A stretch of DNA of 64,000 bases from Macrostomum lignano (lineage: Eukaryota): positions 65,096-129,095 of the forward strand of contig NIVC01001341.1 in NCBI GenBank assembly GCA_002269645.1, given 5' to 3'. The notes under the pieces were generated by a model. That model saw nothing but the letters and a program-made list of their open reading frames with translations. It ran no database searches and was not told the origin of the DNA. A program made the position numbers and the translations under genes. Shown here piece after piece: positions 8,001 through 14,000 of this stretch. Position 1 is the first letter of the stretch. The number at the start of each line of letters is the position of its first letter.

Positions 8001-11000
8001 TCACTCCTATCTGAGTCACTCTTATTAGTGACTCACTCTTATCAGTGAGTGCTAAGAGTGTGTGCCTGTTAAGTGTGTGCCTCTTATCAGTGAGTCACTC
8101 TTATCAGTGAGTCACTCTTATCAGTGAGTCACTCTTATCAGTGAGTCACTCTTATCAGTGAGTCACTCTTATCAGTGAGTCACTCTTATCAGTGAGTCAC
8201 TCTTATCAGTGAGTCACTCTTATCAGTGAGTCACTCTTATCAGTGAGTCACTCTTATCAGTGAGTCACTCTTATCAGTGAGTCACTCTTATCAGTGAGTC
8301 ACTCTTATCAGTGAGTCACTCTTATCAGTGAGTCATTCTTATCAGTGAGTCACTCTTATCAGTGAGTCACTATCTTATCAGTGAGTCACTCTTATCAGTC
8401 ACTCTTATCAATGAGTCACTCGTATCAGACAGTCACTATTAACAGTGAGTCATTTTTAGTGAGTTACTCTCTTATCAGTGATTCACTCTTATCAGTTAAA
8501 CAAATTTCTAATAATTGGGTAAATAATTAAATATATTGCCACAATGTCCTACAGTAAATCTTATCTAAAACTAAGAAACAATATCAATTTTCCAGCTGCT
8601 TTAATAAGTTCCTCAATCTGCCTCTCTGCAGTCTAACAGTACGCAACTGTTACCAGCATAGCTGCAGACTTTACTCTATTTTTGCATACATAGAGGCCAC
8701 CTAGAGACCTGCGCCAGGCAAAATATTGCGATTGCGATTGAGTTTAAGCTGATCAGCTCGCCACAATATGAGTTTTCTTACTTTCACCCTCTCCCCTTCC
8801 CTCTTTCCCAATTCCACCCATCTCCACAGGCTATCGCTTGATTTCACTCGCAGCAGCAGCAGCCGTGGTGCAGAAAATGAAAGAAGAAGTTGAAGGTTTT
8901 AGAGATGAACACGGCTGCTATGCTGCTTGTTGTGAGCGAGAGAAGGCACCAGGAGCAGGAGAAGTCGTGCAAATTTCGCCCAAGGCTGCTGTTCTCACTG
9001 CAAAATTTGCTAGCGAGATAGAAAAGCATTCAGTGTTTAAAAGAACTCAATTCGTCCCAGTATCTGACTTTCTAAACTGCCGATTTCCAAATGAAGCAAG
9101 TTGGTGCTTTGAGAGCGGCAACAGTCATAATACAGTTTTGTTTCCAAAACCGAGTTTGCAAAGATATGATCGAGAAAAAAATGCACTGAAGAGACCTTTT
9201 ATGAAAGGCAGCAGGCTGTGTGCACCCTGGCGCACTTTTAGCGACATTGTCACACAACCAGTGAGAGGCATTGCTGCCCCCATTCCGCCGACTCCCCTGA
9301 GCAGGCACACAAGCGCGCGGATACGTACGCAGTCATACGCGCAGGCACACACTCACACAGGAGTGTACAGCGGCCCTAACTTTATTTATCGTTAGGCATG
9401 TACACTTCACTGTGCCTTGGGGGTTGGGCCTCAAGGGCGTTAATTGCACGAGCAGAGATTCCAATGTAGCCACAAATTAATGTGACTGCACTTGGAATCG
9501 AGCCTGGGCCGCTGGCACATCAGAGCGCTGCGCTAGACCACTGCTTTGCTTGATTGCTTGCTGTCTCAGGTAGCTTAATTGATAAACTTGTTAGTTCTTG
9601 TTGTTAGCAAATGTTGTGCTACAGGCCGGATCGCGACTCTGATTACCAGGTACCTCAGTGAACGAGCCGAAGATGGCGTCAGTCAACTGGCCGGACTGAC
9701 TTCGGACTCTGAGCGAGGGATCGCGTCAAGAGACTTGATCAGCCCGTCCCTATTGCACGAATTAATCCCCGCCAGTCCCTCAAATAAGAAAAACGCGCGA
9801 CTCACTCTTTATCTTCACGAAGCAGCGGCAACGGCAGTATGGGAGGCTTCACTTAACTTCGCTGTGTCTTGCACAATTCAACCAAACAGATGCCTCCCCT
9901 ACCGCCGCTCCTGCACACATTTATATTTAATTAAACTAGCTGGTTAAGCCCTAGGGTATCGCTACCCCAGGCCCAGCTAGCCAAAATTACGATCGTCTTA
10001 TAAAAGTTACAAAGTCGGGATTGCGATTGGAGGGGGGGAAGAATACAAACCGATTGGCTGGGCCATCAGCCAATCGCAGGGCGAGCGAGGGGCGCACTGG
10101 AGCCGCAGCCAGCCAAAACCGGCTGACCTAACAGACAGTGAGGTGGGTGCAACTGGGGGGGGGGGGGTTGACGCAGACAGAATGGGGGGGGTTGACGCAG
10201 ACAGAATGGGGGGTTGGCGCAGACAGAATGGGGGGGGTTGACGCAGACAGAATGGGGGGGGGTTGACGCAGACAGAATAGAGGGGTTGGCGCAGACAGAA
10301 TGGGGGGGTTGACGCAGACAGAATGAGGGGGTTGGCGCAGACAGAATGGGGGGGGTTGACGCAGACAGAATGGGGGGGTTGGCGCAGACAGAATGGGGGG
10401 GGGTTGACGCAGACAGAATGGGGGTTGGCGCAGACAGAATGGGGGTTGGCGCAGACAGAATGGGGGGGGTTGACGCAGACAGAATGGGGGGGTTGGCGCA
10501 GACAGAATGGGGGGTTGATGCAGACAGAATAGGGGGGGGGGTTGACGCAGACAGAATGGGGGGGGTTGACGCAGACAGAACGGGGGGGTTGGCGCAGGCA
10601 CGCGGCCGGGAGGGGTGGGAGTGCAATGCCGGGCACACTTGACCAAGAGCCAGAGATTGCTCATCGGTGCAAGTGCACCCGGGCACAACACAAATACAGG
10701 CATTACTGGAGTTCTCTAAGCTTTTTCCAAGCCCATAAAGTACATGTACTACTGCTGAACAAAGATTTGTTTTATAGGTGTTTGCACAATTCTCATAACA
10801 ACAAAAAAGTCGCAATAACTGCTCACATTTTCACTTTTCTTGTTCAGGACGAAAGATTGCAAATAATTTACACCAACATGTGGCTTGACACAGTCAGTAT
10901 TCCATCTTTGCCCTGACTGCGATAATGCGATTGCATCGGTTGATGATATTTTTTAAATTTCGTAGCTTTGTTTTAATCTCTACTATAACACTCGGTAGTG

Positions 11001-14000
11001 GTTTCGTATTTGGCAAAAACATTTCCAATTTCATTTCTCTTGCCAAAAAAATAACAGTCTGCATTTTTGTTTTAAAACTGTGTTCTGATTTTTCTGGCTT
11101 GATGTGAATGTTTGTGAGCATAGGTTAGAAATTCCTGGACAAAAATCGTCTTTACCGATGCATGCAACGACAAAGTGAGCACTTTTCAATCCCCAGTTTT
11201 GTTAAACCTTTTTTACACATATGGAGACAAAAATGATTGCAATATCAGGCTATAATGGCGCTTGTGGATGCTGATGAAGTTGATTAGATTGCAACGCACG
11301 GGAAAACCTGCTATCTATCCATTAGTGAACTCCCGAAGGCTTTTTTAACCCTCGCATCTTGGTCATCGGCTGGTCAAATGTATCCAGAAAAGCATTCTAT
11401 AGTATTGTAGTCCCGTTTTTTACAATTCTTCCTTGCTCTGCTAACCTGAGACTCTATCGATCCTTGTTAGTTTACACACCTTGCATCACTATACAATACA
11501 TGCTTTGTTTGGTTATAAACCATTGCGATTTCTGATTTTTTTTAAAGTCTTCTTTTCCATTTCAATATTCAAGTACAAGTACAACATAACAGTTAAATAA
11601 GCCCAGACATCCTTGATCTAGTTTGCTTTACCTTATAGCTCTTACCATGCAGTTTTTTTCGCTCTCAACTCTTTGATTTCTAGGATGAGAAAAACCAGAT
11701 CCTGTTTGCTAACATTTGGTTGGATTTGGTGAGTGCCTCACGCCGGAGCCGATGCAAAAACAGTAACACGTGTTTTTTGACGTAATTTTTTGTACTTTGT
11801 AGTTTGTACATGTTTCAACTTTAGACATCTCGCTTTTGATTGCTTGTTGTGTCATGATAGATCATTGTGTGTACTAGCAAAACAATTGATTGTCATTGTT
11901 GTTATCGGAACTATTAATTACGAATATAGTTTAATTTAACATAAATTGAAGAGGCGGCAAGACCAGGTAGCGATAGTGGTAGAGATTTGATACGACAGCC
12001 AATAGAGGGTGGAGAGGAAGTGGAGAGAAGAGATGAGGGGAGAGAGGAGATTGAGGGGAGAGAGGAGATGAGGGGAGAGAGGAGATGAAGGGAGAGAGGA
12101 GATTAGGGGAGAGAGGAGATGAGGGGAGAGAGGAGATGAGAGAAGAGAGGAGATGAGGGGAGAGAGGAGATGAGGGGAGAGAGGAGATGAGGGGAGAGAA
12201 GAGATTGAGGGGAGAGAGGAGATGAGGGGAGAGAGGAGATGAGGGAAGAGAAGAGATGAGGGGAGAGAGGAGATGAGGGGAGAGAGGAGATGAGGGGAGA
12301 GAGTAGATGAAGGGAGAGAGGAGATTAGAGGAGAGAGGAGATGAGGGGAGAGAGGAGATGAAGGGAGAGAGGAGATTAGGGGAGAGAGGAGATTGAGGGG
12401 AGAGAGGAGATGAGGGGAGAGAGGAGATGAAGGGAGAGAGGAGATTAGGGGAGAGAGGAGATGAGGGGAGAGAGGAGATGAGAGAAGAGAGGAGATGAGG
12501 GGAGAGAGGAGATGAGGGGAGAGAGGAGATGAGGGGAGAGAGTAGATGAAGGGAGAGAGGAGATTAGGGGAGAGAGGAGATTGAGGGGAGAGAGGAGATG
12601 AGGGGAGAGAGGAGATGAAGGGAGAGAGGAGATTAGGGGAGAGAGGAGATGAGGGGAGAGAGGAGATGAGAGAAGAGAGGAGATGAGGGGAGAGAGGAGA
12701 TGAGGGGAGAGAGGAGATGAGGGGAGAGAAGAGATTGAGGGGAGAGAGGAGATGAGGGGAGAGAGGAGATGAGGGAAGAGAAGAGATGAGGGGAGAGAGG
12801 AGATGAGGGGAGAGAGGAGATGAGGGGAGAGAGTAGATGAAGGGAGAGAGGAGATTAGGGGAGAAAGGAGATGAGGGGAGAGAGGAGATGAGGGGAGAGA
12901 GGAGATTAGGGGAGAGAGGAGATTGAGGGGAGAGAGGAGATGAGGGGAGAGAGGAGATGAAGGGAGAGAGGAGATTAGGGGAGAGAGGAGATGAGGGGAG
13001 AGAGGAGATGAGAGAAGAGAGGAGATGAGGGGAGAGAGGAGATGAGGGGAGAGAGGAGATGAGGGGAGAGAGGAGATGAGGGAAGAGAAGAGATGAGGGG
13101 AGAGAGGAGATGAGGGGAGAGAGGAGATGAGGGGAGAGAGTAGATGAAGGGAGAGAGGAGATTAGGGGAGAGAGGAGATTGAGGGGAGAGAGGAGATGAG
13201 GGGAGAGAGGAGATGAAGGGAGAGAGGAGATTAGGGGAGAGAGGAGATGAGGGGAGAGAGGAGATGAGGGGAGAGAGGAGATTAGGGGAGAGAGGAGATG
13301 AGGGGAGAGAGGAGATGAGGGGAGAGAGAAAGAGATGAGGGAGAGAGGAGATGAAGGGAGAGAGGAGATGAGTGGAGAGAGGAGATGAGGGGAGAGAGGA
13401 GATGAGGGGAGAGAGGAGATGAGGGGAGAGAGGAGATGAGGGGAGAGAGGAGATGAGGGGAGAGAGGAGGAGATGAAGGGAGAGAGGAGATGAGGGGAGA
13501 GAGAGGACTTTCAGAAGGTGAGGCGTTGTCAATATAGTGCTAATAAACTAATAACTTCCTATCTCGCTACTGTATTTCCCATGCCTAAACCGTGAGTTTC
13601 TGTGAAATTGACCTGCATCTGTTGGTGCAAACAGTTCTATATCCTATATATAGTTTAAAAACTTTACAAACTATAGTCTAGAAATATTGTGTGAACTTGC
13701 GGATTATAATATACATCCGGAAAGACCGTTCAAGTCGGGGAGGTCTATTTCTTTATTAATCGAAGACCCAGACCCAACTGCCAGATGCACAGCTGTTGGC
13801 TGTCTAACAACTTTAGCCTACAGATTCGGCACAAATTATCCGAACTGGTCTGGTTCACGTTTTTCATGTACTTTAATGGAAATTAATGCCTGCATTAACA
13901 ATTCAACAATTTTGTTTAAATTCCTCTTCCAGACTTGGGTCGACTATCATTTTAAATGGGATCCTGCTGAATATGGGCAGGTTACGAAAATTAATATCGA

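Follow-up and report, generated by a model that had tools for sequence, protein, structure and literature searches.

The insect alpha6 nicotinic acetylcholine receptor (nAChR) gene carries mutually exclusive exons 3a and 3b, together with exons 8a, 8b and 8c (Grauso 2002; Jin 2007, PMC1919356; Berger 2016, PMC5111602). Insect exon 3 is 45 bp long and encodes 15 residues that carry loop D (PMC1919356, PMC5111602). The exclusivity of the Dalpha6 3a/3b pair has been seen by RT-PCR (PMC1919356, PMC5111602) and the great majority of insect transcripts contain exactly one exon-3 copy (PMC1919356), although double inclusion of 3a and 3b occurs in Bombyx alpha6 (type III; PMC1919356) and double skipping of exon 3 in Tuta (PMC5111602). 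Here we describe a comparable exon pair in the free-living flatworm Macrostomum lignano, in a 64,000-nt stretch of contig NIVC01001341.1 (assembly GCA_002269645.1, positions 65,096 to 129,095; hereafter the window, with coordinates counted from its first base). Two 45-nt copies of exon 3, exon 3a (10848-10892) and exon 3b (11684-11728), lie in tandem on its + strand within an alpha7-type nAChR gene. We propose, with a probability of roughly 0.65, that 3a is a used, alternative coding exon.

Like Dalpha6, the M. lignano gene has tandem, phase-0 exon-3 copies of 45 nt that encode the beta1-beta2 loop and loop D and are bordered by canonical splice sites, a sub-kilobase intron between these copies (791 nt, compared with 899 nt in Tuta), and a duplicated 87-nt exon 8 for the second transmembrane segment (TM2); its product is alpha7-like, with ~52-57% identity to Dalpha6. 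An earlier, sequence-only reading of the window had placed the pair at the same position as that of Dalpha6, and this placement holds: the same 15 residues, of equal length and phase, stand after QQIIDV and before xWxD, and in insects the two types of peptide, DEKNQILTTNAWLNL and DEKNQLLITNLWLSL, fill exactly the same 15 positions as M. lignano 3a and 3b. However, both insect variants keep DEKNQ and vary only in strand beta2, whereas flatworm 3a alters the loop tip too (DERLQ in the window, DEKKQ in a paralogue). The M. lignano gene, unlike Dalpha6, also duplicates its 195-nt exon 7, and the insect pair is known from transcripts, whereas the M. lignano pair is known from genomic sequence.

In vertebrate CHRNA7, exons 3, 4, 7, 8 and 9 measure 45, 110, 195, 87 and 110 nt, respectively. 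This gene is the best structural relative of the M. lignano gene, with the same exon sizes and with W55 and loop D in a 45-nt exon 3, but it differs in having only one exon 3, in carrying Gln at position 57 where M. lignano has Asp, and in lacking the loop-F insertion.

Two tandem copies of exon 3 in an alpha7-type receptor gene

Exons were mapped by tblastn with human alpha7, which served as a probe only, followed by reading of the splice sites. Exon 3a (10848-10892, + strand) reads GACGAAAGATTGCAAATAATTTACACCAACATGTGGCTTGACACA; it is preceded by ...ttttcttgttcAG, with a long pyrimidine tract (cacattttcacttttcttgttcag) ending in cag at the acceptor, and followed by GTcagt. Exon 3b (11684-11728, + strand) reads GATGAGAAAAACCAGATCCTGTTTGCTAACATTTGGTTGGATTTG, preceded by ...tttgatttctAG (tttctag) and followed by GTgagt. 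Each copy comprises 15 codons in phase 0-0 with AG/GT borders, and each joins in frame to exon 2 (...QQIIDV) on one side and to exon 4 on the other. The 791 nt between them (10893-11683) leave each copy with its own functional-looking acceptor and donor, an arrangement also found in a paralogous M. lignano locus, L002. Direct reading of frame and splice sites therefore bears out the two tandem copies that the sequence-only reading had placed at 10848-11728, and the peptides it had given for them agree exactly with the translations.

The gene encodes an nAChR alpha subunit of the alpha7 type (alpha7, Dalpha5-7 or ACR-16-like), which is predicted to form an acetylcholine-gated cation channel. 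Its nearest solved structures are human alpha7 (E 1e-111, 375 bits), followed by alpha1, alpha3 and alpha4 (1e-83). M. lignano proteins come first in the database, and the named matches are alpha-7, acr-16 and Dalpha6. The Pfam domain PF02931 (Neur_chan_LBD) is matched at 215-217 bits (cut-off, 26), and the M. lignano protein P0002, which is 100% identical to window exons 4-5-7a-8b-9-10, has precomputed matches to both PF02931 and PF02932 (Neur_chan_memb). The translation contains a Cys-loop with 13 residues between its cysteines, and both copies of exon 7 (7a and 7b) encode YDCC, the vicinal Cys pair of loop C, and PPDAGEK, with the GEK motif that precedes TM2. Three tandem exon pairs of equal length and phase, 3a/3b, 7a/7b and 8a/8b, occur in this one gene.

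Exon 3a carries the marks of a coding exon

A position-specific scoring matrix (PSSM) was built from 52 non-Macrostomum exon-3 peptides and used to score all 64,925 stop-free 45-nt stretches on both strands of the window. Only three stretches scored above 0: exon 3b (42.1 bits), a stretch at 58252 (34.5 bits) and exon 3a (30.9 bits), all three with AG..GT borders, and the next-best score was -4.9. The positive at 58252 is exon 3 of a second nAChR gene in the window, and no third exon-3 copy exceeding 5 bits was found in the window. When the ligand-binding domain (LBD) was scored with Pfam, it reached 215.2 bits with 3a, 216.6 bits with 3b and 179.7 bits without exon 3, so that 3a contributes 35.5 bits. 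On this profile, 3a is predicted to fill its segment of the ligand-binding domain equally well as 3b.

The near-invariant residues of the segment (D, E, a basic residue, Q, N, W and L) are all retained in 3a, while synonymous sites are near saturation in the comparisons of 3a with 3b and with its L002 counterpart 3a', where 13/15 codons differ. We evaluated this retention by randomly mutating 3b to the observed nucleotide distance and counting as successes those sequences that stayed stop-free with a PSSM score at least equal to the observed one. Success was reached in 5e-6 of trials for window 3a and in 2e-5 for L002 3a'. Because of these values, and because the introns of the window gene and of L002 have become unalignable, 3a appears to have been maintained as protein-coding sequence for long enough to erase intron similarity. 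Both exon-3 copies bear the signature of purifying selection, with the caveat that 3a is absent from the paralogue L001 and from a Schistosoma orthologue.

Residues that differ between 3a and 3b

The exon-3 alignment to human alpha7 structures is ungapped and covers alpha7 D44-M58. D44, E45, Q48, I49, N53, W55, L56 and an Asp at the Q57 position are the same in 3a and 3b, which upholds the earlier claim that both variants keep the loop-D Trp (alpha7 W55) and an Asp at the Q57 equivalent. The remaining 7/15 residues differ from 3b to 3a: the tip of the beta1-beta2 loop carries K46R and N47L, strand beta2 carries L50I, F51Y, A52T and I54M, and L58T falls at the strand end. Two of these changes stand out among the 63 other exon-3 peptides compared: position 4 is Asn in 59 of them and Leu in none, and at position 15, where 54 have Leu or Met, none has Thr. 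In pentameric channels, the beta1-beta2 loop, with E45-N47 at its tip, is in contact with the M2-M3 linker, and W55 and Q57 are oriented to the ligand pocket. The sequence-only reading had described the pair as swapping loop D. The exon does span loop D; however, 3a and 3b share the same pocket residues (W55 and, at the Q57 position, Asp), and the oddest changes fall on the loop tip and the strand end. We infer that the substitutions point to gating coupling or subunit packing at least as much as to ligand recognition.

That earlier reading had also raised a possible change in pharmacology through neonicotinoid sensitivity. The documented sensitivity of alpha7 depends on the charge at Q57 (Q79 in chicken alpha7): Q79R raises imidacloprid action, and Q79E virtually abolishes it (PMC10906874, citing Shimomura 2002). 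Since both 3a and 3b have Asp at the Q57 position, the switch leaves this known determinant untouched. Trematode orthologues likewise have Asp there (WMDL).

Paralogues and the history of the pair within flatworms

Two paralogous M. lignano loci, L001 and L002, were compared with the window gene; a third paralogue, P0008, lies outside this locus comparison. L002 has the layout exon 2, 3a' (21732-21776), 3b' (23528-23572) and exon 4, and it also holds 7a/7b and 8a/8b. Its 3a' reads DEKKQILITNFWLDQ, in an open frame bordered by cag and gtgagc, with 3b' ~1.75 kb downstream. L001, in comparison, has a single exon 3 ~70 nt past exon 2 and single exons 7 and 8. Over the constitutive exons, identity is 83% between L001 and L002 and 76-77% between either of them and the window gene (window and L002, 76%), giving the paralogue tree (window,(L001,L002)). 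Because of this tree and of the presence of 3a' in L002, the 3a/3b pair would be older than the paralogue split. The simplest history suggested by these sequences is that the common ancestor of the three genes had the pairs and that L001 lost its extra copies.

The two exons have evolved differently. The 15 residues of 3b are all identical in the three M. lignano paralogues, with synonymous changes only (36-38/45 nt identical), whereas 3a and 3a' share 25/45 nt and 9/15 residues, their codon differences being 7 synonymous and 6 non-synonymous. The introns of the window gene and of L002 are unalignable except for a shared satellite. Conservation of 3a in related genomes had been put forward earlier as a test of the pair, and within Macrostomum the exon is conserved, being retained in L002 with the selection signature described above. 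Further afield, exons 3, 7 and 8 are each single in the Schistosoma haematobium orthologue, and the Paragonimus contig L003, which reaches 4.2 kb upstream of exon 4 before it ends, yielded no exon 3.

The neighbouring nAChR gene was ruled out as the donor in a recent conversion of 3a, as its exon 3 and 3a share only 29/45 nt. A further sequence, L008 (NIVC01002951.1), is a 97% copy of the L002 gene and begins downstream of the 3a' position. Its 3b (467-511) has lost one base at the exon-donor boundary (...WLDW followed by taag); this could be an indel of the assembly or mean that the gene copy is broken.

Tandem exons in other protostomes

Same-length isoforms differing only in exon 3 are annotated at NCBI for the nemerteans Lineus and Tubulanus and the chelicerates Limulus and Parasteatoda. 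Same-length exon-3 isoforms are also annotated for the molluscs Aplysia, Biomphalaria and Haliotis, with one copy canonical and one divergent, e.g. EERKQILHSNIWLKV. Two tandem exon-3 copies were confirmed in the genomes of Lineus, Haliotis and Capitella. The divergent Haliotis copy (EERKQILHSNIWLKV) is the upstream one of the two and the canonical DEKNQ copy follows it, an order that M. lignano shares; in Lineus and Capitella both exon-3 copies are canonical and mutually very similar. Our literature search recovered the insect work, and no paper describing the NCBI-annotated exon-3 isoforms, the flatworm case or the cross-phylum pattern.

Five arthropod gene models (P0017, P0073, P0136, P0291 and P0316), from a termite, a sand fly, a prawn, a soft tick and a horseshoe crab, wrongly hold both exon-3 copies at once. 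Their order is constant, a copy of the ILTTN.WLNL type preceding one of the LL(I/V)TN.WL(S/T/K)L type, and because it is shared by these taxa the arthropod pair would predate the insect-chelicerate split.

An alignment to arthropod and mollusc exon-3 variants, as proposed in the sequence-only reading, supports a homologous position for the flatworm pair; it yields no variant-by-variant match. In an identity matrix the flatworm exon-3 variants do not cluster by type, and 3a is identical to every other variant at 7-9/15 residues, so that orthology of 3a with particular insect or mollusc copies is not demonstrable. The Drosophila a and b labels in this matrix are possibly reversed, and the conclusion on clustering is independent of them.

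The other duplicated exons also have counterparts. A 7a type (RRRK...EKVSF) followed by a 7b type (...EKISL) recurs in Lineus (L004, 76671 and 77676) and Capitella (L007, 5428 and 5770), both of which share the pair with M. lignano in the same order, and on this evidence the 7a/7b pair looks ancient in spiralians. Lineus longissimus, in addition, has a tandem 110-nt exon 4 (L004, 69550-69657 and 69712-69819), used in NCBI isoform P0242, whereas exon 4 is single in M. lignano.

Is exon 3a used?

We propose that these tandem duplicates of exon 3 are most likely used as alternatives, one copy per mRNA, as in the insect Dalpha6 pair. The two subunit isoforms would differ at 7/15 residues in the beta1-beta2 loop and strand beta2 (loop D). 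The canonical, slow-evolving 3b would probably be the major form, and the fast-evolving 3a a minor or cell-type-restricted one. Since 3a carries RL in place of KN at the loop tip and T in place of L where beta2 ends, and keeps the loop-D Trp and the acid at the Q57 position, the switch would most likely retune binding-gating coupling or the packing of the complementary face, not the known neonicotinoid determinant.

Several observations weigh against this proposal. No protein with 3a or 3a' is present among the 340 proteins retrieved by 3a-query searches and a profile search, and the annotated Macrostomum models that reach exon 3 (P0001, P0003, P0005 and P0006) all use 3b. The 3a donor (ACA followed by gtcagt) is weaker than the 3b donor (gtgagt). 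Exon 3a is fast-evolving, with 9/15 residues shared with 3a' while 3b is identical at 15/15 across paralogues; its Leu (position 4) and Thr (position 15) are unique relative to the 63 other exon-3 peptides; and 3a' is nearer to 3b' (32/45 nt) than to 3a (25/45 nt). Missing from L001 and from the S. haematobium orthologue, 3a is dispensable in some lineages. As both exons are multiples of 3 nt, the reading frame is unable to enforce exclusivity, and no competing RNA pairing conserved between the introns of the window gene and L002 was found. Among RNA-derived (Logan) Macrostomum sequences, none of this gene turned up with 3a or with 3b; because 3b is missing as well, the lack of 3a transcripts is uninformative and weak evidence.

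Much of this would also fit 3a being the relic of an old duplication, a pseudo-exon that is no longer spliced, with 3b alone making protein. The exclusive use of 3b in annotated models, the unique residues at two otherwise highly conserved positions, the weaker donor, the fast evolution, and the loss from L001 and absence in Schistosoma all point in that direction, and a recent loss of 3a use would still fit. We nevertheless consider a relic unlikely: two paralogues have kept the frame, the AG/GT borders, the pyrimidine tract and all near-invariant residues despite near-saturated synonymous sites and unalignable introns, the simulation gives p values of 5e-6 and 2e-5, and the Pfam bits added by 3a match those added by 3b. 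A further case, in which both exons are used but not exclusively, would have 3a and 3b included together as a 15-residue in-frame insertion, or both skipped, with 3a acting as a regulatory or dominant-negative insert. Since each exon is 45 nt long, either outcome stays in frame; both have insect precedents in Bombyx and Tuta, the Macrostomum UniRef model P0294 skips exon 3, and no exclusivity-enforcing structure was found in the introns. This seems quite improbable, however, given that most insect transcripts carry exactly one copy, that a duplicated beta2 strand is unlikely to fold, and that selection on 3a keeps exactly the residues needed for replacing 3b rather than for sitting beside it. 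As for a chance resemblance of an open frame in an intron to exon 3, only the short length of 10848-10892 speaks for it, and its likelihood is negligible: 3a scores 30.9 bits where the next-best of the 64,925 stretches scores -4.9, its borders, phase, strand and position between exons 2 and 3b all agree, and L002 has the counterpart 3a' at the same place. The PSSM scan and this counterpart rule chance out, and alternative coding use of 3a is the reading that we retain.

Two simple mechanisms of exclusivity can be set aside: the 791-nt intron argues out steric exclusion, and an exon length divisible by 3 rules out exclusion by frame. The inverted repeats seen in the introns are both short and imperfect: the best of the bracketing pairs (10790-10804 with 11896-11910) spans 15 nt at 87%, and none is kept in L002. 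Rbfox-type (T)GCATG motifs occur at 11159 in the window, a single TGCATG within the 3a-3b intron, and at 23589 and 23609, just past 3b', in L002, at positions that do not match; no paralogue-conserved element was found in the 3a-3b intron.

Other features of the gene and the window

The rest of the receptor gene could be followed on the + strand from exon 2 to the stop codon; exon 1, with the signal peptide, was not located by tblastn and splice-site reading. Exon 2 (7742-7890; 149 nt, entry phase 1), placed by tblastn with alpha7 and the M. lignano paralogues and by its splice sites, ends in ...VSLQQIIDV followed by gtaaga. Exon 4 (13933-14042; 110 nt) ends in ...PDILLYN and is 100% identical to P0002. 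A fused exon 5+6 (14569-14885; 317 nt) encodes the Cys-loop and an insertion in loop F of ~24 residues, measured as an alignment gap, with a conserved Cys pair. The insertion is present in the trematode orthologues P0154 and P0304 and lacking in alpha7 and in arthropod and mollusc relatives, and the Cys pair may form a flatworm-specific extra disulphide on the complementary face. Exon 7a (16664-16858; 195 nt), of the RRRK...EKVSF type and included in model P0002, encodes loop C with YDCC, the pre-M1 region and TM1, and is followed by exon 7b (17590-17784; 195 nt) of the ...EKISL type. Exon 8a (19196-19282; 87 nt), encoding TM2 and the M2-M3 linker, precedes exon 8b (19726-19812; 87 nt), the copy in P0002. 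TM3 is encoded by exon 9 (21228-21337; 110 nt), and the cytoplasmic loop, TM4 and the stop codon by the last exon (23739-24353).

Satellite arrays occupy nearly all introns of the receptor gene (7999-8496, 10161-10597, 12022-13503, 16018-16432, 18605-18990 and 19965-21102), for example 86 copies of a 17-mer between 3b and exon 4 and 34 copies of a 33-mer before exon 9. In L002, an array between 3a' and 3b' matches the 17-mer of 7999-8496 in the opposite orientation. Downstream, a GC-rich block (30856-37935, + strand; 55-64% GC) with long open reading frames for reverse transcriptase, RNase H and integrase domains is a long terminal repeat (gypsy-like) retrotransposon, situated between two receptor genes. 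The second of these, also alpha-type and on the + strand, extends from 56674 to 63156 and past the window end, with YYSCC in loop C and a single exon 3 (58252-58296) that shares 29/45 nt with 3a.

Significance

The M. lignano pair is probably a Dalpha6-style pair of alternative exons, a known kind now found in a flatworm, in a gene with three such pairs. For pharmacology the outcome is negative: an acidic residue occupies the neonicotinoid-determining loop-D position in both variants, and the switch should not change this determinant. The parasitic-fluke orthologue examined, that of S. haematobium, has the canonical exon 3 only. In M. lignano itself, a laboratory animal ready for transgenesis, isoform-specific function is directly testable.

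Exons 3, 7 (pre-M1) and 8 (M2-M3 linker) may encode parts that meet at one interface. We tentatively raise the idea, which we think doubtful as yet, that the three pairs go back to an alpha7-like gene that already had mutually exclusive exons in the protostome, or at least the spiralian, ancestor, and were kept because they jointly encode the binding-gating interface. M. lignano could then make up to 8 subunit versions of differing coupling, and 3a would act mainly on gating and not on ligand recognition.

With the M. lignano gene, Dalpha6-style switching of exon 3 would reach into Platyhelminthes. Added to the mollusc, nemertean, annelid and chelicerate cases, the flatworm pair points to tandem alternative exons in alpha7-like receptors as a protostome-wide feature rather than an insect-specific one, and this wider pattern is a more interesting lead than the single flatworm pair.

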